Positions 37,861 through 64,000 are shown, counted from the first letter of the stretch. The stretch: DNA of 64,000 nt from Oopsacas minuta (GCA_024704765.1 JAKMXF010000031.1:6666-70665), one strand, 5' to 3'. The notes: a model not told the origin generated them from the sequence alone. Numbers and translations: made by a program.

Positions 37861-37893
37861 TAGGGGTGGGGGTAACGTCATGTGATGCATTAA

Positions 37894-38577: not shown

Positions 38578-39563
38578 AAACATAAACAAAATAATAACGA
38601 ATATAATTGTAACGAAAATAAACTATACCATCAGCTGCGCGACAGCTTAGTGCCTCAGGTTAGAAAACAATAAATTCATATATGATTAATCCAAAAGTGT
38701 AAAAATCGAATACAGCATATGCGTTATAATTAGAACGTCATGATGACGTAATAATTCCATGATAAGTTAGCTTTTGGTCAGAATCATGACATCAGGACAT
38801 GTGGCACCTTGAGGAGTACCTCTGTTTCAAAAATTTCAAACTTCTATCAACTATATTTGCTGAGCAGTGTTGAATAATGTGATTTTTGAAAATCAAAAAG
38901 GTGACAATTAACTCACAGTTTTGGTCATAGGTCTGAATTTTCCTTCAAATACTCGAAATGGTCCGAGGCAGGACCAAAGTACCCCCCCTGTATACCAAAA
39001 ATCAGCCCTCGAGGTTCTCCAGGTTTTTCAATCAATTCTGGACATACTAACATATATATGCACACTACCCTGTGTAGCCGTTTAGAGCAAGCCTGTATTT
39101 ACATTTTGAAATTTGGCCAATTTGTTTACTTTATATTCATAAAAACAACAATATGATTTCTCTTCGTAAGATCATCTGTTGTATGTTGCTAATGGTATCA
39201 GAAACACAAAGAATATTCCATTATTTCCTAATTAGTTATGATTTCTAGTCTATTGTGTAAACATTTAGATATTAAGCGTATCAAACAATACAAATACTTT
39301 TTCAAGTCAATTGAAGGATAATATTCGTAGAATCAATCTAGATACAACATTCATACATTCTAGCAAACCATAAAACATATCTTTGAAATATCAAAATATT
39401 GTTACTTAGTAAACCATAACATTAAAATTCAAATCTTGTATAAGATTAACCTTGCTCAGTTTAGCAGCGCCAAATACTCAATTTGGACGGTAACGACAGA
39501 TAAAGGTTGAGAAACGCTGGAGGGTTTATCTCACTATTTGAATGACCATTTAATAAACAGAAC

Positions 39564-40432
39564 TTACCGCTTCGCTAGTGAAGTGGGTGGGCTGTCACCG
39601 GGATGCTTCCGCTTGCGGCAAGCGCGATCCGTTGGCGGTGGAGGAGGAGGAGGAGTTGGAATCGGGATCTAGTAAAGAAAATAAAATAAAACTCGTCCGT
39701 AATAGGATGTATACATTCACACATTCTGGTGTACTCACTCTTGGTGGTGGAGCAGTAGTTGCTAGATAGAACAAAAGTTGTACTCGAAGGGAGTCGCATA
39801 CCATTCGAGACCTATCTAGTTCCTCCTTCAATACTTTCTCACATTTTAATAGAGCTTGCTTCTCATCCTCCAGTTGTTTCCTCCTAGTCTCCTCCATTTG
39901 AGCATTATTCTCTATTTGCTTCTTCAAATTGTGATTAGCTCTAGTGAGTTTCTTGATCTGATCACGTAGATAACTTGTTAGTTTATCATTCTCTACCTGT
40001 AACATCTTATATAATATTTCAAACATTGAATAATTGGAGAACAATTGTACTGGAGTTTCATGCAAATTAATAATTGGAGAAATTCCTATTTACAATTTGT
40101 ATATTATTCCTATTTAAGTCACATTGAAGTGTCTTAAACTATTTTAATTATTCTTAGACAATTCGTTAGTGGATTTTGGGAAAATTTTAACGCAGAATAT
40201 AATGAAGGGATTATCAATGATCAGTAAGATAGATGAAACTAACTTTCTTAGAATCTTCAATTGGGATAATTTTCTGAGTTTCATCCGTTCTTACCAACGT
40301 TCTACTGTTTATGATCTTTGGTTAAGTCAGCTTATCCACTCCCTCTTTCTCCTTCTCCTTCTCCTTCTTCTCGAAGAATTCTTTCAATAGCTCTTCTTTC
40401 TCACAGTCAATAGCAAGCTTTATTTCGGGCAT
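39564..40432 (-). pseudogene. Left-arm copy of the 3-exon coiled-coil/Pro-rich gene
   Basis: Same splice sites as 62996-63864 but AAA>TAA in exon 1 (KLT*). Confidence 0.65.
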
Positions 40433-41746
40433 TTTCGTTCCTCACGTAGAATGTGTTTTAATTATTCAGGAAAACAAGACAATAGTTCAATAAAAATAGG
40501 GAAGAAATAGAAATTAATAAAAATTAGATAATTTTTAATAAATTATAAATGAGAATTTCCAAACTTATGGGTGTATAAAAATTGAAATTATCATAGATTG
40601 TGAATATGCGAAGTATTTGGAAAATTGATATTATCCATTGGCTATGTACGGTATCGGCTCCTCTAAATGTATCAATTTTTCTTTTCACTTCTTTTATACC
40701 TATATTTACCCACATATGATGAAAACTGGAACTTATACGTCTTGCCGTTGGTTTGATATTAAACATAGTATTACGATTTGGGAGCATATCTAATTGAAGA
40801 GCATTGACGAAATGTCGGAGCATAAAGAAAGAAATATTTCGAATATTAAAATTGAATCAAAGAAATTGTAATGTTCTAAACTTGAATGGATAAAGTTACT
40901 AATCATATTTATTACTTTGATTGGTGAGAAGACCGCTGACAGGCTAATGGCAGTTCAAAGAGAGTTTGAAGTATCTCAAGGATCGGATTTCTTTGGAGTG
41001 GAATAATTAAAATTTACAGTGAATAATACAAACTCTATGAACAACAAATACACATGCAATGTGATTATAACTATCCTATTTTATCATATCGTTTGAAAAT
41101 GCCAAAAATGGAAAGAAAAATTGATAAACACCCATTCAAATGTACAAACCACTGTTTCTCAATATTCTTTGGGCCAAATAGCTCCCTTAAACACTTCCGG
41201 TGGGCGAAGAAACGCCCCCAGCGTGAGAAAACTGGTATAAACCAATAAATACCAAGTTAGAGTATTAAATGATATAATTAGTTCAACAACAGCAGAATCC
41301 ATAGAAATAACTAATACAAAATAAATAGCAATGATTGTATCTATTGTATCAGTACGGAGATTAGAAATATACAATTCAAAATATTACAAAGCTTTAGAGA
41401 AATAAGTTTAGTGCAAAATACAAATAATATACAAATGAGGGCTGACCTATAGCTATCGGATATTTACATAGTTTCAAGCAAAATACACTCCTTTGAGAAT
41501 CTCATCGTGTATCTGTACTAGTTTAAACAGGTTTAAAGTTCTCCGCTCATCGTTTGCAAACTCAATACTAATAAAGAGATATATTAATATATTTGCGAGA
41601 TAATAGTCACCATTAAAATGCATTGGGTATAACATTTGTAACACTTTCTCAGAGATGAACCAAGATTTCTCATAAATAATTAGAATAATTCCGAGTTCAA
41701 CAACTTTATATGAATATGCTAAGGTTGAATATTATGAATAACTTAC

Positions 41747-43192
41747 CCATGTTCATCTCTCTCCATCAAATGGTATCTAGCTCTGAAAGCAACTAATGCG
41801 CGTAATAAGCAGGAGCTGGAATAGATACAGATCTGGTACACCCTACATATGTATGAAATAATTGGTAAGTAAGAGATTGTATCTCATCAGCTGTAAAGTT
41901 GTTCTCATCCCATAATACGTGGCAATGAGATGGATGAGATGTTCTCTATAAGAACAATATTCAATTGAATTATTGGTTGAATATACATTGATCGAAGGTC
42001 TAATAGAAACAGTAGGACAGCGGTCCCAAACATTTTCACCCGTGGACTCATATACCATTTTAACACATGCTGTGGACCTCTTCACAGAAACCACTGAGAT
42101 CCTGTGGGCCCTTGTTGTCATCTGACCCGCGGCATTAAGAATTTCTAGCAATCAAAATCAATAAGATCGCTAAAACATAATCCAACCATATAACTTAATA
42201 CAAAACTTATATACGTATTACAAAATATGTGTAAAATAGCTCCAAAAATAAGAACTTACAAATATTTACATATAACGCTAGTGTATCCATAAATGAAGCA
42301 AATTATAATCTACAAATTGCAACTACAGATGCCATAAATAATTAATATTACTTTCCTATATACATACCTGAATACCTGAATGACTACACAGATAGAAATC
42401 AATTCTGTTGGATGAGTAATACCTACATCTACTGTAGTACCAGCTGGGATGTTACCAGATTTACCACATTGATCTTCCTCCTCTGAACAGAACAGATGGT
42501 GTGGTGTCTCTTCTGGACTGTAACGAATGTAATGCCAGGCTTGTAGTCAGCTTCTAAGATATTACCAAAGATTCTCTTACGGCTCTCCATTCTTGATTCA
42601 ATACCTGTGACGTAAATAGACTCATTACATTATAACTATCATACCTTCAACCCTCTCAGAATCTTGCAATTCACAAGAAATTTGGGAAAGATTTGCAATT
42701 TTCGTACCTGATTCCCCAAATAATCGCCCAAAATGCTTTTCATGAAGAATTTTGAAAATCCGGGAAATGATTATAGAGGTTGATAAGAATGTAAAATATA
42801 AAAGTAGTTGAATTGAATACTGAACATATTTAGTTTGCATCTTTGGATATCCCAAAAGATATTACAGTCAGTATTCCATCCAGAAATATTGGCAAGGGGG
42901 AGAAGTACCTAGGGTCCAATCAAATATTCCATTGTTATTGTATATAGTATATTCTTATAGTTAAACTGCGATAACAACATAGCATGACTGTACTGACCTG
43001 TTGAACTTGTCCTTCACTGACTCCATCCCGAAAGAATATAATCCTCTGAGGCTTAAACCTGGCAGATTTGTAGAATTAAATCAATAGATCTCGGACCATA
43101 GCAGCTAACTCTGTTATTATCTCTTGTCTGTGTTGCTGTACAAGGACTGAAGCACTGTAAGGACTAGGATGAGCGTCCATACTTTCAACTAA
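41747..43192 (-). pseudogene. Argonaute (AGO clade) PIWI-domain fragment, three exons: 43192-42998, 42604-42368, 41945-41747
   Basis: [76 protein letters not shown]; GT-AG sites retained; stops and frameshifts. Confidence 0.93.
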
Positions 43193-43299
43193 CTAACAAT
43201 ACAAGAAAGAGTGTAAATAGCGAATTGAAATGTTATAACGGGTATTCGGACTCAGCCACTTCTGACTTGTTGAATATTGGAGAGAATAATACAGGTAGC

Positions 43300-43650
43300 A
43301 GTGGATACCGGTAGTAGTGGATACCGGTAACAATGGATACTGGTCGCAGTGGATACAGGTAACAGTGGATACAGGTAGCAGTGGATACTGGTAACACTGG
43401 ATACTGATAGCAGTGGATACAGGTAACAGTGGATACTGGTAGCAGTGGATACAGGTAACAGTGGATACTGGTAGCAGTGGATACAGGTAACAATGGAAAC
43501 AGGTAGCAGTGGATACTGATAGCAGTGGATACAGTTAACAGTGGATACTGGTAGCAGTGGATACAGGTAACAATGGAAACAGGTAGCAGTGGATACTGGT
43601 AACACTGGATACTGATAGCAGTGGATACAGGTAACAGTGGATACAGGTAC
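43300..43650 (+). repeat. 16-bp minisatellite, about 22 units (agtggatac + aggtaac/tggtagc variants)
   Basis: Direct reading; variant unit aatggaaac recurs 80 bp apart. Confidence 0.95.
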
Positions 43651-43940
43651 CAGGGGCATCTATTGTATGCTAGTTATAAGAACCATGGATATGCACTAAT
43701 TGAATAATGATGTCCGCCACAATGCTACACATGTTCTCACCTATACACGATTTGTAAAGACGGAAACTAAGAAAGCAAAGTTAGGGAAAAATACAAATAA
43801 AATGTTTGTATTTAGCAAAGTAGTATTCAACAAATCACTTCATTTATATATACAAAAGCTAGCAATATAATTTGACAGGGTTAGTCTTATCGCAGTCTTA
43901 TCGCCCCTCCTAGGGCTAAGGAGTATGGGAGTCGGGATTC

Positions 43941-45041
43941 TCAGGCTCTTGAAGACATTCTTGGACTCACTGCGTCGCTTTTCCGCCTGAATAGAGCAAA
44001 GTTCCTCTTCTTTGCTTTCTTGTCAGAATTCGAAGAATCCTGTTGAGACATTAAATCGTCAAGTAACGCCTTACGTAGTTTCCTAGCAACCGAATCATTC
44101 TGAGGAATTTGTAGAGTACTAACAATTTTATGATAATCATATGAGTTATCAAAATATAGGACAGCTCCGTGTGAGACCTCTAAACTCAATGTTACCACTG
44201 TAACCACCCAGACCAATGGAATGTAACCATAAGGAAATCTGTCCATTGGACCTAAGGGTAGATCTGTCCTGTCTGTGAATGATTGTCTCTGCTTGTTTTA
44301 TAGAATATTCCTCTCATTGTTGTTGGAACTCTTAACCATTCCTAAACTAGTCCTTAGTTCCTTCTTGGACAGATGTTCTAGCACCCTTCCGTCTACACAG
44401 CATTGTCTAGAAATAATAGGAAGGTAAATAACAACAAATACACGTGTTAACTAACGAGTAAATAACAACAAACCTGAAAATATTGCTGTACTGAGTTAGA
44501 CCTAGTGAAGGCAGCCAATGAGAAGCTATCCATTCGTGGTTAACAGCCCTGTAGGTGGGGTAGAGACAAGGGGTACTAGCTTAGAGAGACCTGCCCTATC
44601 TTGGACAGCATTCATGGGGTTGAGTCTCAGGAGAGGCTGTAGTATTCCCAGTTCTTGTTCGTAGTCCCTCTTTCCCATTGACAGGAGCATAGGAACTATT
44701 TTGCATTGCAAACTGACTGCATCTCCCACTGACTGCGGTAAACTACTGCTCCACCTCTACCCACGCCTGAAGAGCCCAGGAGACCATACACAGGAATTGT
44801 GTGTTCTCTCTTTCCACAAATGAGATTGAGGCCTGTAGTCTAGCTAGTCACCCTTCTGGCGCCTCACACACACCTACAGAAGAGGGGATCTCTTTTGTAT
44901 CCGGGGACTTAGTTTCCCTAAAGGAACTGACTATCCGTCGGATAGAGCATTTCCTCTTGAGTGATTTCTTGCGGAAGCGGGACATGTAGAGCTTGGGAGC
45001 TACTGGCTCCAATTCTGTCCTCTCAAAGAGGGACTCATCCA
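43941..45041 (-). pseudogene. Liprin-alpha-like triple-SAM C-terminal region (two exons)
   Basis: NHEWIASHWLPSLGL, VDGRVLEHLSKKELR, HGAVLYFDNSYDY...LQIPQND; frameshifted. Confidence 0.8.
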
Positions 45042-45354
45042 CTATATGTCAGTTATCAGATATTGTGGTAGCGGGTATTTACAGTTGTGTTCGCCTAATA
45101 GCAATATTGCTCAATTTGTAAGTTACTTTTAGCCCCTAAGTGAGTATTTCTTGTATATTTTGTTCCTCTAATAGCAAGTTAGCTTATTAGCTTTCAAATT
45201 CCATTCAAAATGCGACTTCTTATTACTCAAACACCACAGATAATGCATATTGATTAAACTGTGCTTTATAGTGTATTCAAACAATATACTAAAGTAGTAT
45301 TACGAATGGAAATATCAAAGAGTTCAAATGTTCATTGAAATTTTTGTGATCGGG

Positions 45355-45669
45355 TTATCGGTCCTGTAGATTGCTTAGGTGTTTGTGTGATTTGGAATTT
45401 ACATTTCTACAACAATCAGGCATTGGTACAATATTCTTGGAGCGGATAGATCCTTGCCTAATTAAAGCATCTAAATTATCTTTCCCTTCAACCATCACCA
45501 TGTACCTCTCAACTCTCCCAACAGAATTGTGTTTTCCCAATTTCAATTTGGTTCTCTTGGGAGTCTTTGGAGGAGATGAAAAGGTAACCTCCTTAATACT
45601 ATAATTCCGAAACTTCCCTTTCCCTCTGAGCGAAGACGTAAATGCTCTCATCCCAGTTTCCTTTCCCAA
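45355..45669 (-). pseudogene. 3' half of the ORF at 58014-58619
   Basis: Near-identical peptide RTFTSSLRGKGKFRNY...; 5' half absent in this arm. Confidence 0.6.
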
Positions 45670-46355
45670 TTAACTTCCAGAAAGCGGAAGCATGCTTGTG
45701 ACACCCCCCCCCACTCACCAACAAAGCACTCCATGTGTCTACGTCCCTATATATTGTCGTTGAGAGCCAGTTTCCTTTCGATTACATGTATATTAAGATA
45801 AATATCCCGAAAAGACAACAAACTTCTATTTGTAAATTAGTATTATATTGTAAATACCAATTCTGCTAACGTCATCACTAAATCCCGCCTAAACAACTCA
45901 ACCACAAATTTATGAACCTCAACGATGTCACAAAGGATCCCCGTACCCAATAAATGATTCTGGTTGAAACCTGAAACCGTACTTGTAGCTACGGTCCTGT
46001 AGTTTAATAAGTATAGTTTGTCTATAAATGCCAAATACACACTGGCCTTCTCGAGAACATATCTGCCGTATAGTAAGTAGGCTATTGTATCTTCCTCTAG
46101 CGAAGTTAAGATCAAAAATAAGAGAGGGAAGTTTCTAAGCGGGGATAGTTGAATACTAGCGCAACGCTTGCTAGTACGCTGTACGACAGCTTAATGCTTC
46201 GCGTTAACCTATGTATTGATTAAACAGCTAAAGCTTATAGAGTTATTGGTCGCGTAGCGACCAATAACTCGAGCCAATAATATACCCATCTGACTTAGCC
46301 CATGATATACTCATTATTACGCAATCAACAGAATAGTGAAATGTAAGTAATCAAT

Positions 46356-46694
46356 TCAGTGATAATTGGGATACAGCTGTTTATAGTCCTTTATGTGATT
46401 TTCTCTTGTATCCTGGCTACAACAACCTGTAGCAATCAGGCGTTGAGCCATTTCCCTAACCCGCAAATCATTCAGGCTCCTAAACTCCCTGATACTTGTA
46501 TCACTTACAACCCGCCGATGTAGCAGCTGTCTCATCCTCAACAGTTTCTGGCGTCTTCTAACTGCTAACATGCGCCTTCTCTCAGCCTCTCTGCGCATTC
46601 GTGTTATGGCTCGAAACCGACGCTGTATTAGTATAATCGGCATAATCCTGGGTGAGTTCTGTGCCAATAATTGTCCAGAAGGAATAGGGGCCAT
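46356..46694 (-). CDS. Arg-rich small protein of unknown function, 112 aa
   Basis: ATG-initiated ORF, open in both arms (partner 56360-56734). Confidence 0.4.
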   Translation of the reverse strand: MAPIPSGQLLAQNSPRIMPIILIQRRFRAITRMRREAERRRMLAVRRRQKLLRMRQLLHRRVVSDTSIREFRSLNDLRVREMAQRLIATGCCSQDTRENHIKDYKQLYPNYH

Positions 46695-47308
46695 CTTTTT
46701 GTCAAAGTACAGTCAATTCAATAATATCTAATTCAGCAATAACTAATCACATAAAACCATATATTAAATAGTACTTAGCCCATGCGCTACTAGCATACTA
46801 TAGGCAGATGAAACTAAAGTGAACTACTGACACGTGTTGATATGTAATTTGGCTTCTGGGTCAGATATTTTTTAAGTGCTGGACCACACAGTGGGCTATA
46901 ATTGCGAATTATTAGTATTAGGGTTTACGCGTTCAATTTTAGAGATAGGTTTATAAAATACATTATTACTGTATAGTAAGTCGACTATTGTGGTTCTTTT
47001 GTTGATTTCAATTTTGTTCTATCACATCAGGTTTTCAATATATGACGTAATCTTAATTACCATATACAGTAATACAGAAATCTAGATATACACTGAACTG
47101 AGAATTATTAAAAGAAATAGAATATGAATATATTATGGCTATGGTAACTGAAGAATAACTAACATACGAATATCTTACTGATGAATTAATTTATTTAACT
47201 GCTGGACCAGTTTGCATTATATTCAAATATTTGTGCGTCACTTATATTATTTCACTTCTTTGAGTGCCTAAGTTTTATCCGAATTGTTCCACTTTTTTCT
47301 AAATAGCC

Positions 47309-49154
47309 ATGCCTAGAATGACAAATGCGAATGCTCGGGAGAAGCTTTCTTCCACTCTAAAGCAGTTCCGTTCCATTACGGGAGAGAGTATTGGGGTCGT
47401 ATTTACGTGGAGAGGAAAGTTAGCTACAATGGGGACTGAGAATTTCCAAAATTTGATCCATTCTCTGAAGAATGAATTTTGTGGGTCAATAGTTGGTTCA
47501 CATCGTGAGACAGACACTGAGAAGTTCAATCAAGACAAAGAAATCATCGATCAGTTAGATGGAGATTTAGAGAGCTACAGTGTCCCAACGCTTCGAAGAC
47601 TAGTGTCATGGATCACTAAACGCTCAGTTGGTGAGTTTATTTTATTGACAGATATGAATACTTGACTAAGCGATTATGTGTGAATATTCTAGATTATGTT
47701 AAGCCAAACTTATCCTGAATTGCTGACACAACGATGATACATTTTAGACATTCGTTTGAATTCTATGCGAAGATACCATTCTTCATACTCGCCTTAGCTT
47801 AATGCTGTGATTAAACATTACATTTTAGGAAAGAATGTGTCCTTCTGGAATGACGCATCTCTTGTACCTTCATTCTGGCCGAGAGATGTGGAATATAAGA
47901 ATATTAAACATTCCAACAAAAAGACTCTATGTCGGATTATTCGAGGTTATAGGAGGAATGACAACCTAGAGGAACCTGTTAATGGCGTCCGAGACAGATC
48001 TCCCCATATTAGCCCTCAGAAGACTCCTCGCGTTGTTCCCAAGAAATTTAAGAAAAGTCCCGAGAAGAAAAATAAATTCGAACACCATCCAGTTATGACA
48101 CCGATCACTTCTCTTCCACATTCCTCTTCCTATATTCCAGTTTCTGATGTCGACTCTAGTTATAGTGAAGGTTTCCTTCCAGGGTTCCGACAGTTTGAAC
48201 ACTCAACTGATGATGTAATTGTTCCTACTACTACACCTAGTTTAGTATCTCAGTTAGGTATAACACCTTTGCAACCCATCTTTGAATTTTCACCGATACT
48301 TAACCAGAAGGACCGAGATCAATCATTGTTAGAATTGTCCACTAAGAATACATTCCTCACTGACACGTGTATGAACACCTTTTCTGTAAGTTAAAATGTG
48401 ATAAATACAAGTTAATTGCGTTCAATTTTCACATATTCATAGGAACTCCTGAAGAATGTGTATCCTCATGTGCAGGGTCTCCGGGACACGATTCTCTCTA
48501 AGGTGTTATATAGGTGCCATGCTTACTATGTACGAGTTTTGTAACACGAATTATTTTAATGTATCTTCTTTAGAACAGACAATTTGTCAGAGCTCCTCGT
48601 CCCAGCATGCAAATTCACCATGATGGAGGACTCCATTGGGTATGTTCCAGTGTCGATGTTGAGGGCAATGTTACGGTGTATGATTCCCTGGCAACTGATA
48701 GAACGAGTGAGGAGCTGGATATACAACTGGCTCTGCTATATGGACGTAGTGCTGGTAAGATGACAGTAACATTTGCCCCTATTCAACAACAGAGGTGGTG
48801 CGGACTGCAGATTATTCGCGGCAGCAGTTTGTCTTGCAATAGCGAACGGTGATGATCCACAACATATTCGCTGGAAGCAAAATAGGATGAGATCGTACCT
48901 CAGTGATTGCTTCAAAACTGAGACTTGATAGCAAGCAGTTATGGACTAAGATACTCACTTCTTCCAGGTCAGAATTTAAGATTGAGTTGAGGTGTCTCTG
49001 TAACCTGCCAGAATTTGCCTCGAGTAACATGATTGAGTGCTCGAAATGTCGCCAGTGGTTTCATAAACCATGTGTAGGACTAATCGATGACAGCAATGAT
49101 GTTGAGTGTTTTTCCTGTCCTCAATGCAGCCCTCATCGATCTTCATTACCATAA
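47309..49154 (+). pseudogene. NRF1/Ewg-like DNA-binding domain + Ulp1-like (C48) peptidase + PHD finger; exons 47309-47630, 47829-48385, 48443-48502, 48574-~49154
   Basis: In-frame GT-AG joins; KLSSTLKQF..TG, TLRRLVSW..K.SVG....W.....PSFWPRDV; QIHH...HWV...VYDSL, QQQ/GGADC; CLC...MIECSKCRQWFHKPCV..CPQC; frameshift ~48790 and stops ~48925. Confidence 0.72.
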
Positions 49155-49272
49155 TAAATCCAATATCAGTATGTACTCATTATCCCATTTAGTAAGGACA
49201 CACATACACTCTAGTGCAATTATGATCTCATTGATCTCTATGTATTACAAAAATACTCACTACATGTATATA

Positions 49273-52312: not shown

Positions 52313-52315
<3 letters not shown>

Positions 52316-52375
<60 letters not shown>

Positions 52376-52398
52376 TATTATTATTATTATTATTATTA
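52316..52398 (+). repeat. (TTA)n microsatellite
   Basis: Direct reading. Confidence 0.97.
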
Positions 52399-52431
52399 GA
52401 GTATTTATTGTATTGATATCGTAATGTAGTA

Positions 52432-54552
52432 CAGTAAACATTGGATTTAATGACACTCGTTTGGGCAGGCAAAAAAGGTCGCTATATCCGATTTGTCGCT
52501 ATATCCGAGGAAGCTTTATATATGCATTATATACCGGATGACACCCATATTTATTCGTGTTATACGATGTAGTATACTATGTTGTTGTATTATCGTCATA
52601 ATAATGTCATGAATATGATTAGTTTGACTTGAAAAAGCTAGTTATTGAGGCCTGCTGCAATCGACTCAGCTGACTTTCAGCCAAGAAGTTTTGAAGTTCG
52701 CTGACAGACTGAATCTGTTTCTCTGAGCATGGGAGGGTGCGCAAGAACTTCATAACGGTGTCAAGGCATGAGACAACAGTGTCGAATTACGGAACATGGA
52801 TATTGGGGGGATATTCATTGTCGTCATTTTCGATATCAACATCGTCATCACTTGGAGGGTGCAGACTATTAAGGATATCGTCAATTTCGAGACCATTTGC
52901 ACCAGGTCCAATTGCAACACCATCATCCAGAGCAACAAAGTCCTCAAATGATAAGCCATCCGAAACAAGCCCTGCTTCTTCAGCACTGCTCCAAATTGAT
53001 GTGTCAGGTGCTGAGGTTTCTTCAGTGGCAGGTAAATCCTTGAACCCAACATGCTGATAGCAATGCTTGATGGTTGTGGGGGTGACATTATCCCAGGACA
53101 TTTTTAGCCAGTCCAAGGCCTGGAGCAAGTCAAGCTTGAACCCCGTTTCAGAATCAACTGCCAATAAACGCTTCCTAACAAGAAACCGGCGGTAGTGGTG
53201 CTTGAGGTTCTTGATTATACCTGCGTCCATGGGCTGAGTCATAGACGCTGTGTTGGGTGGGAGAAAGAAAAGCTTGATATGGGACAAGTTAAGGTTCGGA
53301 TGACCTGAGAAGTTGTCAAGAATCATGGCGATTTTCCTGTCGTCAAATCTCATAGAATTGTTCAACTTCCTTAGCCATTTCTCAAAAATCTCACTTGTCA
53401 TCCATGCGGTTCGATTGGCATCATACTCCACTGGAAGATTCAGGACGCCTCGGAAACAGTGGGGGCGCTTACTCTTTCCAATAACGAGTTGCGGAAACCT
53501 CTCCCCAAGCGCACTAGCTGCTACCAATACAGTGAGGCGTTCCTTGGAGCGCTTGCCTCCTTTGCACAAGTCTCCTCGGAAAGACAAAGTTCTGTCTGGT
53601 GTCATCTTCCAGAATAGCCCAGTCTCATCAGCATTGAAAATATCCTTGTCTTCAAACTCTTCTCTGATCAGTTTCAGCTGCGTTGATATCCAGTTGTCAG
53701 CACCAGCGTGATCTGCTGATTGGCTCTCACCCGAGATTTGACGGCTGGTGATGTTATGGCGCTTCTTCCAACGATCTATCCAGTTCAGATCAAGGAACAC
53801 AGGTTCGAGGTAGCCAGGCACATTTCGTACTTTCAGTTTCTCCGCGATGCATATCGCCTTTTCTAGAAGAAAGGGACAGGTGACTGACTCATCTGGAGCT
53901 GTGCTCTTCAAACAACGAAACCACTCAAGCAGTGCAGTGTCGATCTCCGGGTATCGAGACAGCTTTGTGCTCTTCGAATCAAGATTTGATGCACTTGCGA
54001 TGGAAGTTTCAATCATCGCCCGATCTTTCAAGAAGCCGGCTAGGGTCCCATGTGAAATGCCATGTTTCTGCTCCAAGAATGGTCGCTTAGCTCCTGCATC
54101 AAGCTCCTTCAAAATTTTGTATTTTTCAGCAAAAGAAAAGCGCTTCCTTTTGCCAAGTCCGCTCGAATCCATGACGATTAAATTTTAACATTACATTGTA
54201 CGTACAATAGCTTTTAATAAGCGTTTTCGTAAAAAGCCAGGTGCTGTTGATTCAATAGGAGATTTAATTGTTTTATAATTTAAATCAATTATTAAACCCT
54301 TAATAATTCACTAATTAGTACACTTTTCTTAAGTCCACAGTATAGACAACCCAAAAGTCGTAATATCCAATTGGATTTGCATAGAGCAGGCATAGAAAAT
54401 ATGTCGCTAAATTCAATGTGTCGTTATCTGACAGGTCGTTATACCCGAGGTATGGTGTGTGCAGAATAATGCTGCGAGATTCTGGCAAGCAAAATGAGTC
54501 GTTATAAGCGATTTGTCGTTAAAGCCGATGTCGTTAAATCCAATGTTTACTG
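52432..54552 (-). mobile_element. Full-length Tigger/pogo DNA transposon (2121 bp)
   Basis: TIR cagtaaacattggatttaatgaca / tgtcgttaaatccaatgtttactg with TA on both sides; encloses an intact transposase. Confidence 0.93.
52787..54172 (-). CDS. Tigger/pogo transposase (CENP-B HTH + DDE_1), 461 aa
   Basis: Uninterrupted ORF; WIDRWKKRH, FNADETGLFW, ILDNFSGH, QPMDAGII (DD-D triad). Confidence 0.95.
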   Translation of the reverse strand: MDSSGLGKRKRFSFAEKYKILKELDAGAKRPFLEQKHGISHGTLAGFLKDRAMIETSIASASNLDSKSTKLSRYPEIDTALLEWFRCLKSTAPDESVTCPFLLEKAICIAEKLKVRNVPGYLEPVFLDLNWIDRWKKRHNITSRQISGESQSADHAGADNWISTQLKLIREEFEDKDIFNADETGLFWKMTPDRTLSFRGDLCKGGKRSKERLTVLVAASALGERFPQLVIGKSKRPHCFRGVLNLPVEYDANRTAWMTSEIFEKWLRKLNNSMRFDDRKIAMILDNFSGHPNLNLSHIKLFFLPPNTASMTQPMDAGIIKNLKHHYRRFLVRKRLLAVDSETGFKLDLLQALDWLKMSWDNVTPTTIKHCYQHVGFKDLPATEETSAPDTSIWSSAEEAGLVSDGLSFEDFVALDDGVAIGPGANGLEIDDILNSLHPPSDDDVDIENDDNEYPPNIHVP

Positions 54553-54554
54553 TA

Positions 54555-55080
54555 TTACGAATATTACTATCAAATAGTTCAAGTGTTCATTTAATTCTAC
54601 GTGAACGAGTTATCGGTACTTACAAACTATTCAATAGAACTCGCGAAAGTTCGTGAAGTATTCCAACTCTATGGCTCGGAAGAATTCTGTTCCCATTTAA
54701 CACTAGGTCTAACTGAAAATGCGAACGAGTCCTTACACAATGTCATTTGGAACTTCTGTCCAAAGGCAAATACCTTTCTCCTCAAAGTGTGCGTATTAGC
54801 ACTGCAATTTTGCTGTAACAATCTTCAATGAAGGAGAACTAAGCATTTTCGGATTTATGCGGGAGCTGAAACTTTGTCCTTCGTATACTTCATTCCGGTC
54901 TGTTGTCAAAAGGGAACATGTAAAGGAACAACACCGAACCTACATTCGGAAGGCAAATGTTCATAGGGGAGCAAGACGTCTAAACTAAACAAGGCTCCGG
55001 CGAGAAACAGGACTTCTCCGAAAGAAAGGTGGACCCAGCTATAAATCTAGCGCTTTAGGATCTGAGACCCGGTGAAAACC
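54555..55080 (+). pseudogene. C-terminal remnant of a Mutator-like (TQNxNES-type) DDE transposase
   Basis: GLTENANESLHNVIWNFCPK, then frameshifted FNEGELSIFGFMREL. Confidence 0.65.
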
Positions 55081-56359
55081 TACAAGAACACCCTGTTCAC
55101 GTGCAAGAACTAGAAGAACTTCCAGGACAAGAATATCTTCCAAAGGGAAGAAAGTCTGTCAGACGATCCCAAATTCTTTTACCTCAAATTCAGAATCTGA
55201 CTTTTCAATAAAAGACAGCGGTAGTGAAGTTAGTCATGTGATTCTTTGTGATATATGCCTCCTTACACACCCTCCGACACAAAGACAACAAGTTATTTCA
55301 ATTTGCTCCAGGGTGAAGTGGCTCACATGCATATCCTGTAAGAAATCATTCCACCAGAGATGCACAGAACTTGACAGGGGAGCTGTATCTAATTCTTCGG
55401 GGAATACACAGTGATAAACCAAATATTGGCATTTTATTTTTTTGGCCGCATGACGGAAATATTCCTGAATTTTGGTTTTTCACTTGATAATCTCCACGAC
55501 ATACTCATGTTTATCATGGAGTTATCACACCTTATGATTTGCTCAAAACATTAGGTGGTGTATTAAGCGATTGGCAGCTTAAGGAGTATTGAGATATTCT
55601 TATCCTATGTGTTAATACAGAACTTTAACCCTATTGAGATATCTTTTGATTTATCGATCGTAATTGGTTTATATGACTTTACAAGAGGAGAAACTTTGTT
55701 TATAATCTTTATGATTGTATTTTTGAAAATTGGTAATTCTATGTGACTACAGGCCGCCTATACCTGTAACATTGTATATATTTTTTCTAGGACTTTTCCC
55801 AGTGGTAATTTAATAATATTTTAGTAATGAATAATTCATTCCACTGCAATAGTTTAGTAGAATAAGGGGTTAGCAGGCTAAAGTCAAAAATACATACTTT
55901 GAATTTTATTTGCAGTTTTCAGTAGGGTCCGGACAAAGTTATCAATTTCTTGATTTTATACAAGGATTAATCAATCAATCAGTAATTATTCTTCAAATGA
56001 TTAGCAATGCTACAATACTTTAAGTTGATATACAATCACTCTCTGAAAGTTTGAAGTCATTGTGACATATACTTCATCATGGAAAAGTCGTTAAATTTTG
56101 ATAAAGTTAGTTTTGAGAAAATCATGTTTGAAGTTAAAATATTGCTTTATTTGAAATTCGATGCTTTGTCGGGTTTTAAAAGCTATTATTATTGATTGCG
56201 ACACATTTGAGATTACGGTTGTAACAATTCCACCACTGATGCATGAATGACATATCTTTCTACTCATAATACTAACGTATTCACATCAATATGGGTTTTA
56301 TGTGATTAGTTATTGCTGAATTAGATATTATTGAATTTGACTGTTCTCTGAACAAAAAG

Positions 56360-56734
56360 ATGCCCCCCATTCCTTCTGGACAATTCTTGGCACAGAACCC
56401 ACCCAGGATTATGCCGATTATACTGATACAGCGTAGGGTTCGAGCAATAGCACGAATGCGCAGAGAAGCTGAGAGAAGGCGCATGTTAGCAGTCAGAAGA
56501 CGCCAGAAACATTTGAGGATGAGACAGCTTGTACATCAGCGGATTTTGCTTGATACAAGTATCAGGGAGTTCAGGAGTCTCAATAATTTACGCGTTCGTG
56601 AGATGACTCAACGCCTGATTGGTACAGGGTGTTGTAGCCAGGATACACGAGAAAATCACATTAAGGACTACAAAGAGCTCTATCCCAATCATCATCGAAT
56701 TGGTTGCTTCTATTTTCACTATCCTGTTTATTGA
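56360..56734 (+). CDS. Arg-rich small protein of unknown function, 124 aa
   Basis: Paralogue of 46356-46694; frame preserved over 112 codons. Confidence 0.4.
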   Translation: MPPIPSGQFLAQNPPRIMPIILIQRRVRAIARMRREAERRRMLAVRRRQKHLRMRQLVHQRILLDTSIREFRSLNNLRVREMTQRLIGTGCCSQDTRENHIKDYKELYPNHHRIGCFYFHYPVY

Positions 56735-58013
56735 GTAATAATGGGTATATATTATTGCTCTTTTTGTGATACATTAGAGTTTGATATATAATTAATATGG
56801 TGTTTCGTCCCGGCAATGAACTCTTCAGTTTATTTGAATTTATTTGTATATTCGAAGTTTATAACTCAATAGTTTCACGAGTGTGAAATCAGCAGCGAAT
56901 TCCAGCAGTGAAATATGAGCACAACTTAACAATAATTCTGTCAATCCTCGATCAAAACATTCACCTGAATTTGGTTAGTACCTTTGTCTAGAGCGGTGCT
57001 TTTTCTAACATTCAATAAATAATCACTATTGCACCTCTCTTGCCACAATGACGTTTCAAAATTTTAATACAAAATCTCCATAGGGAATATTCAGTCACAG
57101 TAGGGGAGGTAGTTCTTCAAAGAGCAGGGGTTTGATGCACAATCAGTTTTATGTGCTACTTTGGACACATTTTGAACGTGTTTACGAGCGTATAACTCAT
57201 CCAGTTTGAATCGATGACCTATTTTAGTTTCGGTATTCGTAATCAACTAAAGATTTTGTGTCGTATGAGTGGTTATTCGAATATTTTTGGGAATATAATA
57301 AGAAGTACCAATAAGTTTTGACAAACATGGTTCCCCGAATCCACTACAAATTGGTCCAGTGGGACCATTTTGACAATTATCCATGGTATCGAATAAAAAT
57401 GGTCCCCCTCTCACTTTTGAGGAATTCTCAAATATTTCTCAGCGTTTAAATGACTTCAAACTTGAGGATCTAATCTATAAAGTGAGTTACTCAGATTATC
57501 ATCTGTCTTAGAAAAGGGCAACTATTTATACGAATTGATTATATTAATTGAAGAGCATGTAGAGATACTTTTCACGATCTCTACTCTGTCAGAATATTGC
57601 CCTCCTTTAATTTGTTCATTCGTAGAGTCGCCATACCCAGGAAGTCACGTTTTCCCATTTACACTTCCAAAGTAACTTTATTGCATCTTTGACAGTTCTC
57701 CATCATATGAATAGGTAGTAAATAATTAGAGCTCCATCTTGAAACTTTTTGAATTAAATATTTTGGATTTTGTTCGGCAAACCCTGAGAGTTGATACATT
57801 GAAGTAATATAGATATCAACCATACTATGTAGTGCTATGAATAACTACGTAGACTATTTGGATATGTAATTTTAAATAATTCTTCTCATTATGCGATAGA
57901 ACTGAGATTACACCTACCTCTTCACACAATTACATACGTACTATCTAAGTATAGGTGTTATTAGAGCGATACTGTATTCTAGACACAAACTAGTAAAAAA
58001 TTGACAAAATGAA

Positions 58014-58619
58014 TTGAATATAGATTTGCTAGTGTTAATGAAACCAGCCTCACGACAAGAACGACTAAGGTTTGTTGCTAATGCACACCATGATCTAACA
58101 GTGATGGGAGAGAGACATATGAAAGATCTGGAGCAGGACTTCATGTCTCTCATTCAAGATTTTGAAGACAAAATGACTCGATTGAAGTTGACTCTACACA
58201 AGGAGTTCCTCACAATACGAATGGATGGGCTCCACTCGCTGGGGAATGCACTCCCAGAAATAGTGGATGTTTGGGAGAGGAATCGAAAGGAAAATGAGAT
58301 GAGAACATTTACGTCTTCGCTCAGAGGGAAAGGGAAGTTTCGGAATTACAACATCAAGGAGGTTGCCTTTTCATCTCCTCTAAAGACTCCCAAGAGAGCC
58401 AAAGTGAAATTGGGAAAACGCAATTCTGTTGGGAGAGTTGAGAGGTACATGGTGATGGTTGAGGGGAAAGATAATTTAGATGCTTTAATTAGGCAAGGAT
58501 CTATCCGCTCCAAGAATATTGTACCAATGCCTGATTCTTGTAGAAATGTGAATTCCAAAATCACACAAACACCTAAGCAATCTACAGGACCGATAACCCG
58601 ATCACAAAAATTTCAATGA
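58014..58619 (+). CDS. Unknown protein with helical N-terminus, weakly Borealin-like
   Basis: 201-codon open frame; start codon uncertain; RHMKDLEQDFMSLIQDFEDKMTRLKLTLHKEFLTIRMD loosely resembles the Borealin/Nbl1 N-terminal helix. Confidence 0.4.
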   Translation: MNIDLLVLMKPASRQERLRFVANAHHDLTVMGERHMKDLEQDFMSLIQDFEDKMTRLKLTLHKEFLTIRMDGLHSLGNALPEIVDVWERNRKENEMRTFTSSLRGKGKFRNYNIKEVAFSSPLKTPKRAKVKLGKRNSVGRVERYMVMVEGKDNLDALIRQGSIRSKNIVPMPDSCRNVNSKITQTPKQSTGPITRSQKFQ

Positions 58620-58909
58620 ACATTTGAACTCTTTGATATTTCCATTCGTAATACTACTTTAGTATATTGTTTGAATACACTATAAAGCACAGTGTAATCA
58701 ATATGCATTATCTGTGGTGTTTGAGTAATAAGAAGTCGCATTTTGAATGGAATTTGCTAACTAATAAGCTAACTTGCTATTAGAGGAACAAAATATACAA
58801 GAAATACTCACTTAGGGGCTACAAGTAACTTACAAATTGAGCAATATTGCTATTAGGCGAACACTACTGTAAATAACCGCTACCACAATATCTGATAACT
58901 GACATATAG

Positions 58910-60051
58910 TGGATGAGTCCCTCTTTGAGAGGACAGAATTGGAGCCAGGAGCTCCCAAGCTCTACATGTCCCGCTTCCGCAAGAAATCACTCAAGAGGAA
59001 ATCCTCTACCCGACAGATAGTCAGTCCTTAGGGCAACTAAGTCCCCGGATACAAAAGAGACCCCTCTTCTCTAGGAGTGTGTGAGGCGCCAGAAGGGTGA
59101 CTAGCTAGACTACAGGCCGCAATCTCATTTGTGAAATGTGAGAACACACGATTCCTGTTATGGTCTCCAGAGGTTCTTCACATGGGGGTGGAGGTGGAGC
59201 AGGGGTTTCCCGGAGTCAGTGGGAGATGCAGTCAGATTGCAATTGGAAACAGTTCCTATGCTCCTGTCAATGGACAAGAGGGACTACGAACAAGAACTGG
59301 GAATACTACAACCTCTTCTGAGACTCAAACTCGTAAATGCTGTCCAAGAGCAGGCAGCTCTCTCTAAAGCTAGTACCCCTTGTCCCTACTCCACCTACAG
59401 TGCTGTTAACCACGAATGGATAGCTTCTCATTGGCTGCCTTCTCTAGGTCTAACTCAGTACAGCAATATTTTCAGGTTTGTTGTTATTTACTTGTTAGTT
59501 TACACGTGTATTTGTTGTTATTTATTTTCCTATTATTTCTAGACAATGCTGTGTAGACGGAAGGGTACTAAAACATCTGTCCAAGAAGGAACTAAGGACC
59601 AGTTTAGACATGGTTAAGAGTTCTCATAGGAATAGTCTCCAGTAGGGAATGTTTGCTCTCCGTTCCCTCAACTCTGAGAGGAATATTCTAGAAAACAAGC
59701 AGAGACAATCATTCACAGATAGGACAGATCTACCCTTCTGGTCCAATAGGCAGATTTCCTTATGGCTACATTCCATTGGTCTGGGTGGTTACACTGGTAA
59801 CATTGAGTCCAGAGGTCTCACACGGAGCTGTCCTATATTTTGATAACTCATATGATTATCATACAATGGCTAATGCTCTACAAATTCCTCAGAATGATTC
59901 GGTTGCTTGGAAACTACTTAAGGCGTCACTTAACGATTTAATGTCTCAACAGGATTCTTCGAATTTTGACAAGAAAGCAAAGAGGAAGAGCTTTGCTATA
60001 TTTAGGCGGAAGAACGACGCAGTGAGTCCAAGAATGTCTTCAAGAGCCTGA
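58910..60051 (+). pseudogene. Liprin-alpha-like triple-SAM region; exons 58910-59475 and 59543-60051
   Basis: AVNHEWIASHWLPSLGLTQYSNIF, FWSNRQISLWLHSIGLGGY, HGAVLYFDNSYDY; frameshifts. Confidence 0.8.
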
Positions 60052-60462
60052 GAGTCCCGACTCTCATACGCCCTAGCTCTAGGAGGGGCGATAAGACTCG
60101 ATAAGACTTACTCGGTCAAATTATATTGCTAGCTTTTATATAATTAAATGAAGTGATTTCTTGTATAATAATTTTGTAAATTCAAGCATTTTATTTTGTA
60201 TTTTTCCCTAACTTTCTTTTCTTAGTTTCCGTCTTTACAAATCGTGTATAGGTGAGAACATGTGTAGCATTGTGGCGGACATCATTATTCAATTAATACA
60301 TATCCATGGTTCTTATAGCTGGCATATATAGATGCCCCTGGTACCTGTATCCACTGCTACCTGTATTATTCTCTCCAATATTCAACAAGTCAGAAGTGGC
60401 TGAGTCCGAATACCCGTTATAACATTTCAATTCGCTATTTACACTCTTTCTTGTATTGTTAG

Positions 60463-61704
60463 TTGGTTGGAAGTATGGACGCTCATCCTAGTCCTTACAG
60501 TGCTTCAGTCCGTGTATAGCAACACAGACAAGAGACAATAGCAGAGCTAGTGCTGTGGTCAGAGATCTATTGATTTAATTCTACAAATCTGCCAGGATAA
60601 GCCTCAGAGGATTATATTCTTTCGGGATGGAGTCAGTGAAAGACAATTTCAACAGGTCAGTACAGTCATGCTATGTTGTTATCGCAGTTTAACTATAAGA
60701 ATATACTATATACAATAACAATGGAATATTTGATTGGACCCTAGGTACTTCTCCCCCTTGTCAAAATTTCTGGATGGAATACTGACTGCAATATCTTTTG
60801 GGATATCCAAAGATGCAAACTAAATATGTTCAGTATTCGATTCAACTACTTTTATATTTTACATTCTTATCAACCTCTATAATCATTTCCCGGAATTTCA
60901 AAAATTCTTCATGAAAAGCATTTTGGGCGATTATTTGGGGAATCAGGTACGAAAATTGCAAATATTTCCCAAATTTCTTGTGAATTGCAAGCTTCAAAGA
61001 GGGTGGAAAGTATGATAGTTATGATGTAATGTGTATATTTACGTCACAGATATTGAATCAAGAATGGAGAGCAGTAAGAGAAGCTTGTAGTAAACTAGAA
61101 GCTGACTACAAGCCTGGAATTACATTCGTTATCGTCCAGAAGAGACACCACACCCATTTGTTCTGTTGAGAGGAGGAAGATCAATGTGGTAAATCTGGTA
61201 ACACTCCAGCTATGTATATAAGTTTTGTATTAAGTTATATGATTGGATTATAATTTAGCGATCTTATTGATTTTAATAGGTAAAAAATTCCTAGTGCAGC
61301 GGGTCCGTGGATCATTTGGTAGTACTCAGATGACAGCAGGGGTCCACAGGATCTCAAAGGTTTCTGTGAAGAGGTCCACAGCATGTGTTGAAATGGCATA
61401 TGGGTCCACGGGTGAAAATGTTTGGGACCGCTGTCCTACTGTTTCAATTGGACCTTCGATCAATTTATATTCAACCGATAATTCAATTGAATGTTGTTCT
61501 TATAGGGAACATCTCATCCATCTCATTGCCACGTATTATGGGATGAAAACAACTTTACAGCTGATGAGATACAATCTCTTACTTACCAATTATGTCATAC
61601 ATATGTAGGGTGTACCAGATCTGTATCTATTCCAGCTCCTGCTTATTACGCGCATTAGTTGCTTTCAGAGCTAGATACCATTTGATGGAGAGAGATGAAC
61701 ATGG
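60463..61704 (+). pseudogene. Argonaute PIWI-domain fragment; exons 60463-60655, 61050-~61211 (3' deleted), 61506-61704
   Basis: [71 protein letters not shown]. Confidence 0.93.
61297..61433. mobile_element. hAT-type MITE in the captured AGO intron
   Basis: cagcgggtcc...gggaccgctg termini; 8-bp TSD tcctagtg/tcctactg; a truncated copy is in the left arm (~42018-42135). Confidence 0.75.
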
Positions 61705-62995
61705 GTAAGTTATTCATAATATTCAACCTTAGCATATTCATATAAAGTTGTTGAACTCGGAATTATTCTAATTATTTATGAGAAATCTTGGTTCATCTCT
61801 GAGAAAGTGTTACAAATGTTATACCCAATGCATTTTAATGGTGACTATTGTCTCGCAAATATATTAATATATCTCTTTATTAGTATTGAGTTTGCAAACG
61901 ATGAGCGGAGAACTTTAAACCTGTTTAAACTAGTACAGATACACGATGAGATTCTCAAAGGAGTGTATATTGCTTGAAACTATGTAAATATCCGATAGCT
62001 ATAGGTCAGCCCTCATTTGTATATTATTTGTAGTTTGCACTAAACTTATTTCTCTAAAGCTTTGTAATATTTTGAATTGTATATTTCTAATCTCCGTACT
62101 GATACAATAGATATAATCATTGCTATTTATTTTGTATTAGTTATTTCTATGGATTCTGCTGTTGTTGAACTAATTATATCATTTAATACTCTAACTTGGT
62201 ATTTATTGGTTTATACCAGTTTTCTCACGCTGGGGGCGTTTCTTCGTCCACCGGAAGTGTTTAAGGGAGCTATTTGTCCCAAAAAATATTGAGCAATAGT
62301 GGTTTGTACATTTGAATGGGTGTTTATCGATTTTTCTTTCCATTTTTGGCATTTTCAAACGATATGATATAATAGGATAGTTATAATCACATTGCATGTG
62401 TATTTGTTGTTCATAGAGTTTGTATTATTCACTGTAAATTTTAATTATTCCACTCCAAAGAAATCCGATCCTTGAGATACTTCAAACTCTCTTTGAACTG
62501 CCATTAGCCTGTCAGCGGTCTTCTCACCAATCAAAGTAATAAATATGATTAGTAACTTTATCCATTCAAGTTTGAAACATTACAATTTTGAAACTCGAAA
62601 TATTTCTTCCTTTATGCTCCGACATTTCGTCAATGCTCTTCAATTAGATATGCTCCCAAATCGTAATACTATGTTTAATATGAAACCAACGGCAAGACGT
62701 ATAAGTTCCAGTTTTCATCATGTGTGGGTAAATACAGGTATAAAAGAAGTGAAAAGAAAAATTGATACATTTAGAGGAGCCGATACCGTACATAGCCAAT
62801 GGATAATATCAATTTTCCAAATACTTCGCATATTCACAATCTATAACAATTTCAATTTTTATACACCCATAAGTTTGGAAATTCTCATTTATAATTTATT
62901 CAAAATTATCTAATTATTATTAATTTCTATTTCTTCCCTAGTTTTATTGAACTATTGTCTTGTTTTCCTGAATAATTAAAACACATTCTACGAAA

Positions 62996-63864
62996 ATGCC
63001 CGAAATAAAGCTTGCTATTGACTGCGAGAAAGAAGAGCTATTGAAAGAATTCTTCGAGAAGAAGGAGAAGGAGAAGGAGAAAGAGAGAGTGGATAAACTG
63101 ACTAAACCAAAGATTATACACAGTAAAACGTTGGTAAGAACGGATGAAACTCAGAAAATTATCCCAATTGAAGATTCTAAGAAAGTTAGTTTCATCTATC
63201 TTACTGATCATTGATAATCCCTTCATTATATTCTGCGTTGAAATTTTCCCAAAATCCACTAACGAATTGTCTAAGAATAATTAAAATAGTTTAAGACACT
63301 TCAATGTGACTTAAATAGGAATAATATACAAATTGTAAATAGGAATTTCTCCAATTATTAATTTGCATGAAACTCCAGTACAATTGTTCTCCAATTATTC
63401 AATGTTTGAAATATTATATAAGATGTTACAGGTAGAGAATGATAAACTAACAAGTTATCTACGTGAACAGATCAAGAAACTCACTAAAGATAATCACAAT
63501 TTGAAGAAACAAATAGAGGAGAATACTACAATAGAAGAGACTAGGAGGAAAAAGCTGGAGGTTGAAAAGCAAGCTCTATTGAAATGTGAGAAGGTATTGA
63601 AGGAGGAACTAGATAGGTCTCGAATGGTATGCGACTCCCTTCGAGTACAACTCCTGTTCTATCTAGCAACTACTGCTCTACCACCAAGAGTGAGTACACC
63701 AGAATGTGTGAATGTATACATGCTATTACGGACGAGTTTTATTTTATTTTCTTTACTAGATCCCGATTCCAACTCCTCCTCCCCCTCCACCGCCAACGGA
63801 TCGCGCTTGCCGCAAGCGGAAGCATCCCGGCGACAGCCCCCCCACTTCACTAGCGAAGCGGTAA
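62996..63864 (+). CDS. Predicted 3-exon, 186-aa coiled-coil protein with poly-Pro tract and basic NLS-like tail; exons 62996-63184, 63423-63689, 63760-63864
   Basis: Exons of 189/267/105 nt with two phase-0 GT-AG introns give MPEIKL...SKK|MLQVEND...PPR|IPIPTPPPPPPPTDRACRKRKHPGDSPPTSLAKR*; ATTAAA about 10 nt after the stop. Confidence 0.65.
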
Positions 63865-64000
63865 GTTCTGTTTATTAAATATTTGGAGTGTCGTTTATTG
63901 TAAAAGAACGCAAAGCTTCAGAGAATCATAGAAATAGTGCATTTTGAATTGGTGACTTAATCACAGTATGTTTGATTGAATTACTAACTATACAGTGCAA

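Follow-up and report, generated by a model that had tools for sequence, protein, structure and literature searches.

The stretch of DNA analysed here (the window) comprises 64,000 nucleotides of contig JAKMXF010000031.1 from the assembly GCA_024704765.1 of the glass sponge Oopsacas minuta, and window positions equal record positions minus 6665. It contains a pair of kilobase-scale inverted arms, each carrying pieces of unrelated host genes, around a spacer that holds two DNA transposons. The assembly is a hybrid, built with SPAdes from Illumina and Canu-corrected PacBio continuous long reads and subsequently processed with SSPACE, Pilon and GapFiller, from DNA that was pooled from several adults (PMC10280926). 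Runs of N occur at 29278-29546 and 31404-32321, with zero Ns across 32322-64000. Window base 64000 is the end of the contig, and the flank of the right arm is therefore only 120 bp long.

Four assembled copies were compared, namely the left arm, the right arm, contig 97 and contig 113 (L007), of which the latter two were found by a search with a liprin open reading frame (ORF). Read data were Logan contigs from four runs, placed on 58001-64000 at a likeness of at least 85%. The runs derive from the assembly's own sample and hence are not independent of the assembly, and summed depth in them does not equal copy number.

Inverted arms and the spacer between them

The left arm lies at 39548-46762, with its genes read on the minus strand, and the right arm at 56289-63880 on the plus strand. 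Eighteen colinear inverted blocks between the two resolved into five BLAST blocks, with about 6.1 kb aligned at about 94% identity: 39548-42217 against 63880-61211 (95.3%), 42442-43313 against 61211-60342 (94.7%), 43625-44329 against 60366-59662 (91.4%), 44326-45665 against 59623-58285 (93.9%) and 46305-46762 against 56750-56289 (88.1%). The inverted repeat was thus confirmed as real and lies far above chance expectation. In a global alignment of the arms, identity was 97-99% in the outer 2.7 kb, 91-93% in the liprin part and 89.8% in the innermost 400 bp; the Borealin region is not truly alignable, and the arms differ there by deletions. A first interpretation made from the letters of the window (the sequence-only reading) had described two inverted arms of about 7.2-7.6 kb, diverged by substitutions and indels, each with an Arg-rich ORF, a Borealin-like ORF, liprin SAM exons, AGO exons and a three-exon gene in one orientation. 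This description was borne out, including the partial state of the Borealin-like ORF on the left, where the C-terminal part only is present and the right copy is full.

The same reading had taken the spacer to be made of DNA transposons, which holds for 7.6 of its 9.5 kb, occupied by two complete elements, but not clearly for the remaining 1.9 kb. One of the two is of KDZ type and lies at 46764-52224 (minus strand), with TTAA on both sides and 32-bp terminal inverted repeats (TIRs) at 46762-46793 and 52196-52227. It contains a split transposase on the minus strand and an accessory gene with a PHD finger on the plus strand. The Pfam KDZ domain was detected on one exon at 22.5 bits, below the cut-off of 26.6, and a spliced model of the KDZ copy in contig 113 has a precomputed KDZ match (E<=1e-5). 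The accessory gene is convergent, at 47309-49154 (+), and its annotated product of 405 aa has a faint DNA-binding match of Nrf1 type; the PHD finger (E=3.8e-6) was placed at 48903-49154, just downstream of the 405-aa model.

The other element is of pogo/Tigger type and is likewise complete, at 52432-54552 (minus strand), with a TA duplication and 30-bp TIRs at 52426-52455 and 54529-54558. Its transposase ORF (52787-54172, 461 aa) is intact and matched DDE_1 (E=2.4e-40) as well as HTH_Tnp_Tc5. The KDZ-type and the pogo-type element are both self-contained insertions, each bounded by TIRs and a target duplication of its own. Within the window, the KDZ TIR (24 nt, up to 3 mismatches allowed) was found only at 46770 and 52219 and the perfect 19-nt pogo ends only at 52432 and 54552, in neither case at the outer arm ends. 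Across 52200-58199, probably in the pogo element, 6-15% of exact 31-mers were also present in runs of at least seven other organisms and in several marine metagenomes, for which the candidate causes are a transposon shared very recently, close relatives, or the presence of sponge DNA in the samples.

Two remnants make up the rest of the spacer. The one between KDZ and pogo (52225-52431) contains a scrap of Borealin coding sequence at 52233-52296 and (TTA)28 at 52315-52398. The one between pogo and the right arm (54553-56288) contains a second Borealin scrap at 54553-54620 and a weak PHD-like stretch at 55076-55411 (+), and was single-copy among the loci compared. Both Borealin scraps follow the orientation of the left arm. 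No inverted homology that would mark a hidden palindrome centre was seen in the spacer after both transposons were conceptually removed.

Gene pieces carried by the arms

The Borealin piece originated by copying at the DNA level. At 56824-58737 (+) the right arm contains upstream intergenic DNA followed by nearly the whole single-exon gene, and remnants are present in the left arm at 45214-46287. A search with the Borealin-like ORF led to two O. minuta proteins, P0001 and P0002. The first is encoded at L001 in an ordinary neighbourhood of kinesin, DEAH helicase, Borealin, ribosomal protein P and ankyrin genes, and the right arm matches this true Borealin locus with 87-91% nucleotide identity over 7154-7629, 8540-8899 and 9597-10689, from just past the DEAH helicase through intergenic DNA and nearly to the end of Borealin. 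About 2.8 kb of Borealin-upstream intergenic DNA falls within the copied stretch (L001 7154-10689). The left arm retains different parts of L001 (7934-8443 and 10235-10689), which argues for an ancestral copy of about 3.5 kb that was whittled down differently in each arm. Compared with its parent, the Borealin copy has a ratio of non-synonymous to synonymous divergence (dN/dS) of 0.47, which points to relaxed selection.

The second protein, P0002, is 58% identical in protein sequence and lies in another mosaic, L002 (contig JAKMXF010000295.1, 5825-11505). There, two arm pieces are directly joined and are followed by a Borealin copy, a long (TTA)n tract and the 5' end of a DEAH helicase, which is the neighbour of the true Borealin gene. 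The pieces are reused in L002 in another order than in the arms.

The liprin-alpha piece consists of 3' exons with their introns, from the SAM domains to the stop codon, at 58714-60077 (+); SAM_1 was matched with E=7.5e-8 and liprin-alpha-3 with E=2.6e-4. Its left copy lies at 43914-45237, a third, partial copy at 35930-36593, and the tandem unit described below begins at this piece. The third copy is truncated where it meets unrelated DNA, and at this border lies a short and perfect fold-back (TCAGCTGTCCAT...ATGGACAGCTGA, 35894-35935), which looks like a templated insertion at a repair junction. Next to the liprin piece, a 200-bp segment (60079-60276; left equivalent 43716-43913) has in both arms the opposite orientation to that in contigs 97 and 113. 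A variable number tandem repeat (VNTR) with a 16-bp period and 22.8 copies occupies 43289-43653 in the left arm, and the right arm keeps a short remnant of it at 60293-60366.

PIWI exons of an Argonaute gene, with introns, lie at 60551-61705 (+; exons 60551-60715, 60984-61166 and 61506-61705). They matched human AGO2 residues 758-807 (E=5e-25) and Pfam Piwi, and the left copy is contained within 41474-43192. The piece is truncated, and its last exon has a 1-bp frameshift in both arms, with the extra T present in all read contigs. Both the Argonaute and the liprin pieces keep their introns. The gene models annotated at the locus include composites, one of SAM plus Piwi and one of the Arg-rich ORF plus SAM.

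Two further genes in the arms are orphans. The Arg-rich ORF was found at 56360-56734 (+, 124 aa) in the right arm, at 46356-46694 (-, 112 aa) in the left arm, and as a third intact copy in contig 113 (L007 5414-5752). Between the right and left copies dS was 0.36 and dN 0.074 (dN/dS 0.20), with 21.5 synonymous against 18.5 non-synonymous changes among a total of 40 (binomial P=3e-5). An exhaustive search of 1.84 billion cluster representatives matched only the ORF itself and no relative. Neither this ORF nor the three-exon gene matched a significant Pfam family, and the Atlas gave sub-threshold IQ-motif-like leads only. The Arg-rich ORF is kept intact in three copies, evolves under constraint and is a candidate young gene. 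A 213-aa annotated model takes its left copy as the first exon and runs on into the liprin SAM exons.

The three-exon gene encodes a coiled coil. Its right copy, P0003, lies at 62996-63864 (+, 183 aa), and its left copy, P0004, at 38546-40432 (-), where it splices out of the arm. The coiled-coil exon has a dN/dS of 0.53, from few changes, and a PDB sequence search with it matched nothing. No RNA run that contained the arm was found. A few GT..AG joints were seen in run X3 at 85% likeness, at which the arm locus and the parent genes are indistinguishable.

A many-copy family of head-to-tail units

The arms belong to a many-copy family. Each read run gave 1,400-3,800 short contigs on 58001-64000, with up to 38 different contigs per variant site, and this variety indicates that many diverged copies exist. 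More than two copies are accordingly present in the raw reads (Logan contigs of the assembly's own sample). Summed depth over 58600-61400 plus 62400-63800 exceeded that over 61800-62400 by a factor of 10-50. Several deletion joints occur in the reads, and two of them (60550>61052 and 61420>62481) are the variants that contig 97 carries. At many sites in 58001-64000, among them 58198, 59720 and 63901, all read contigs differ from the letter of the window; either variants specific to single copies are lost in contig building, or the contig is in places a consensus of the family or a mis-polished copy of it.

In contig 97 (25 kb), two direct copies lie about 8.3 kb apart and KDZ is absent. Contig 113 (21.6 kb) contains three direct copies and is colinear with window 35930-50772 at 96-99%, through the left flank, the left arm, the junction of arm and KDZ and 4 kb of KDZ, after which its KDZ is truncated and joined to another arm copy in direct orientation. 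The junction between units, where ...GAAATAAGGA is followed by GTGGTGT(T/G)TGAG..., is identical in the window (36593), contig 97 and contig 113. From this identity, the repeat unit corresponds to right-arm 58714-63880 plus the equivalent of 39547-36594, a length of 8.3-8.6 kb. The window and both contigs thus hold head-to-tail copies with one identical junction, the mark of tandem duplication, and introns, intergenic DNA and the resident KDZ with its junction were copied along, the mark of duplication at the DNA level.

The unit continues past the left arm over 35930-39547 (minus strand), which is 97-99% identical to contigs 97 and 113. This stretch contains the last P0004 exon, a ceramidase first-exon scrap, a Ser/Pro-rich ORF and the liprin piece of the next unit; the ceramidase match is weak, and a 341-aa model is annotated in the same stretch. 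Both arms do stop at one shared base, as had been noticed from the sequence, but other family copies run through that position, and contig 97 crosses 39548 at 96-97%. The coiled-coil exon has its GTAAGT donor 20 bp inside the outer arm end, and P0004 splices across that end to the exon at 38546. On the other side, the right flank (63881-64000) is unlike the left flank and is high-copy in the reads, with no match in the window or in the compared loci. At site 63901, 4-11 read contigs per run reached a summed depth of about 14,000-80,000. This flank may be a further repeat or an insertion where the assembler stopped.

Target-site duplications (TSDs) and inverted termini were looked for at both ends of each arm, and none were found. 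The left flank ends with ...GAATGACC and the right flank begins with ATTTGGAG..., without a direct repeat or TTAA; the earlier statement that an outer TSD is lacking therefore agrees with the comparison, in which the right flank contributes just 120 bp. Helitron ends (5'-TC, 3'-CTRR, a hairpin and an A/T target) were absent both from the unit junction, at which AAGGA meets GTGGTG, and from the arm ends ...ATAT and ATTTAATAAAC... The outer arm ends are not the ends of an element.

Among the four assembled copies, one segment is confined to the two arms (61411-62421, +; left copy 41030-42040, 97-99.6% identical). It has the lowest read depth, with just 1-2 read contigs per variant site. In their outer half the arms are each other's nearest relatives and share this 1-kb segment, the 200-bp inversion and the 1-bp frameshift. 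Such shared derived characters favour a local inverted duplication that left the arms as true neighbours, over a joining of random family members by the assembler.

Elsewhere in the window, a TRAF/MATH gene is tandemly duplicated at 3046-3915 and 6519-7422 (85-92% identity), and fragments of a 14-3-3 gene are duplicated around 28.8-33.1 kb, adjoining both N gaps. A short interspersed repeat of about 200-260 bp (85-89% identity, both orientations) was found at 7423-7695, 12000-12578, 24476-24812 and 26352-26598, in or near importin-11 and cathepsin genes.

Origin of the inverted pair and comparable systems

We consider it probable that the structure is an inverted pair within an amplified mosaic of segmental duplications, in which the KDZ and pogo elements are later passengers. 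DNA-level copies of unrelated host loci would first have been joined into a patchwork in which all pieces share one orientation and retain their introns and intergenic DNA; these pieces are the Borealin locus, the 3' end of liprin-alpha, the VNTR, the last Argonaute PIWI exons, the coiled-coil orphan, the ceramidase scrap and the Arg-rich ORF. The resulting unit, about 8.3-8.6 kb long, would then have multiplied head to tail and reached several contigs; the probable mechanism is unequal or ectopic recombination, or the repair of breaks on non-allelic templates. One local duplication in inverted orientation would have given the present pair, between whose copies the KDZ-type transposon and later pogo inserted, as passengers and not as the engine. 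Gene conversion between copies may hold the outer halves of the arms at 97-99%, with the inner parts at 88-92%. The duplication and repair mechanism, the gene conversion and the order of these events are what we infer.

Several points weigh against this account. The long-range linkage of the arms comes from one hybrid SPAdes assembly of pooled adults, in which the right arm is at the contig end, and the read runs share the assembly's sample and so do not provide an independent check. Arm homology stops at ...AAAACC(C)ATAT, at most 5 bp from the TTAA of KDZ; with a TTAA every 100-200 bp or so, the chance of such a coincidence is about 0.5-1%, and passive insertion of KDZ does not predict it. 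Nor does plain ectopic repair predict the uniform orientation of the fragments. In the liprin part, moreover, the left arm resembles contig 113 (94-96%) more than it does the right arm (89-92%). Over their full extent the arms are therefore no simple sister pair, and their history is reticulate. Gene conversion or recombination among family members would be the simplest explanation of this pattern.

An error of assembly, in which paralogous copies were falsely joined in inverted orientation inside KDZ/pogo or in a repeat near the contig end, is unlikely. It would be favoured by the many near-identical family copies, the end of the contig 120 bp past the right arm, the shortness of contigs 97 and 113, which are made of the same family, the presence of KDZ at least twice, the hybrid de Bruijn graph assembly from several adults, and the many sites at which the letter of the window is in none of the read contigs. 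However, the stretch 32322-64000 is free of N, the inner 2 kb of the right arm and its junction with the single-copy 1.7-kb spacer are both unique, and the derived characters shared by the arms are missing from the other assembled copies, as a local duplication would give. Two particular artefacts were rejected. A haplotype misjoin is unlikely on the sequence, since the flanks of the two arms, inner and outer, are unrelated. A fold-back from a missed adapter would give identical arms without a spacer, and the arms observed are 6% diverged with indels and enclose a 9.5-kb unique spacer. Quite unlikely, too, is that an unrecognised carrier, mobile or rolling-circle (Helitron-like, or a reinserted concatemer of an extrachromosomal circle), took the unit along as cargo and made both the arrays and the pair. 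Head-to-tail copies with a single identical junction on several contigs are what a concatemer would leave, and the uniform orientation of the fragments recalls Helitron captures, which in maize carry gene fragments all in one orientation. Yet no TC...CTRR end, hairpin or A/T target was found at the unit junction or the arm ends, and the window contains no RepHel ORF. Long flanks and a transposon copied along with the unit are common to the copies, and other mosaics reorder the pieces; the Helitron-end test covers the window, and a larger element with its ends beyond the window would escape it.

The stop of arm homology within 5 bp of the TTAA and TIR of KDZ would be accommodated if the inverted copy was made by a break or an aberrant transposition at the left end of KDZ, by Ac/Ds-like alternative transposition or by fold-back repair primed beside the element; KDZ would then have generated the palindrome without moving it. 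In favour, too, KDZ was already present when the contig 113 copy arose. This origin is nevertheless improbable: the inner end of the right arm adjoins spacer without a KDZ end, KDZ resembles a simple insertion with TTAA on both sides, and divergence is greatest in the inner arm parts (88%, dS 0.36), against 96-98% likeness of the KDZ copies, which suggests that the pair is older than the KDZ copies. The sequence-only reading had itself proposed a giant composite, Pack-like transposon, possibly moved by the KDZ enzyme and with the cargo-laden 7-kb arms as its TIRs. Inverted arms around a transposon-rich core and a cargo of host gene fragments do fit this picture, but it is hardly credible: there is no TSD and no KDZ or pogo TIR at the outer ends, both transposons are self-contained, with KDZ bounded by its own TIRs and TTAA, and other copies run on past the supposed outer end. 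The reading had itself named arm copies elsewhere, unassociated with KDZ cores, as its refutation, and such copies exist: contig 97 carries arm copies without KDZ, and contig 113 has KDZ between copies in direct order. Its other proposal, two inverted copies of a gene-capturing element, survives in part. Two inverted repeat units with host exons are present, but a capturing element is not supported, because the unit lacks transposon ends and its head-to-tail copies have an identical junction, as after segmental or tandem duplication.

Seen as an amplified duplication mosaic, the locus has its nearest described counterpart in the tinkering loci of Drosophila, regions in which dispersed gene fragments collect along with flanking DNA of their parents and which were probably formed by ectopic recombination at transposons (Weisman 2026, bioRxiv 10.64898/2026.08.09.743762). 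Shared features are the kilobase-scale clustering of duplicated fragments from unrelated genes, with transposons dense around them; here, about 11 kb contains pieces from at least six unrelated sources, namely Borealin, liprin-alpha, Argonaute, ceramidase (by a weak match), the coiled-coil orphan and the Arg-rich orphan. Fragments keep parental flanking non-coding DNA, as seen here for Borealin; they are exchanged and re-duplicated, as in L002 and contigs 97 and 113, which reuse the same pieces; and composite models are annotated, here SAM plus Piwi and Arg-rich plus SAM, known from DNA annotation. The present case differs in its glass sponge host and in its co-oriented fragments. It differs also in that the patchwork forms a unit of about 8.5 kb, amplified head to tail to roughly at least 10 copies, with one inverted pair.

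Other systems resemble the locus in single respects. Pack-MULEs, Pack-type elements and composite transposons likewise have intron-bearing host gene fragments between inverted repeats, next to DNA transposons, but Pack-type elements have TIRs of an autonomous family at the outer ends, a TSD and copies with constant ends, and each of these three features was looked for and is missing here. Helitrons are known to capture genes in maize and bats, and chains of co-oriented, intron-bearing fragments from several genes in many copies are common to both; no Helitron termini, hairpin, A/T target or RepHel were found at the boundaries examined here. The human Y palindromes P1-P8, reportedly described by Skaletsky and by Rozen in 2003, are ampliconic and genic and undergo gene conversion between arms. 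Kilobase-scale inverted arms, a non-repeated spacer and gene copies in the arms are found in both cases; in the sponge, one small ORF is conserved in both arms (dN/dS 0.20), and the uneven identity of the arms suggests exchange between them here as well. In contrast to P1-P8, the arms of the sponge are 88-99% alike, rich in indels, filled mostly with truncated gene pieces and part of a larger dispersed and tandem family.

Further comparison is offered by Stellate/Su(Ste) and the hairpin-RNA (endo-siRNA) loci of Drosophila and by Mu killer of maize. In these, as here, chimeric units of host genes are amplified with a transposon copied along, and gene-derived sequence is inverted and could form double-stranded RNA if transcribed through. 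The arms in the window are far longer, with a 9.5-kb spacer between them. It is distinctly improbable that the pair is transcribed as a single read-through RNA whose arms would form a several-kilobase hairpin stem, giving small RNAs against the sponge's own Argonaute, liprin-alpha and Borealin. If it were true, an amplified patchwork of dead gene pieces would act as a self-targeting regulator of RNA silencing in one of the earliest-branching animals.

The analysis removes an unsupported claim of a new class of giant, cargo-laden transposon. For users of the assembly, the locus is a place where contigs break, and gene models of the SAM plus Piwi type are probably chimeras of dead fragments. The compact genome of this glass sponge (about 61 Mb) holds an amplified patchwork of gene fragments that occurs in tandem, dispersed and once inverted, and the Arg-rich ORF is a candidate for a young gene born in a fragment-gathering region. 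Such regions have been described only recently, in Drosophila, and the sponge case would suggest that the process is widespread in animals.

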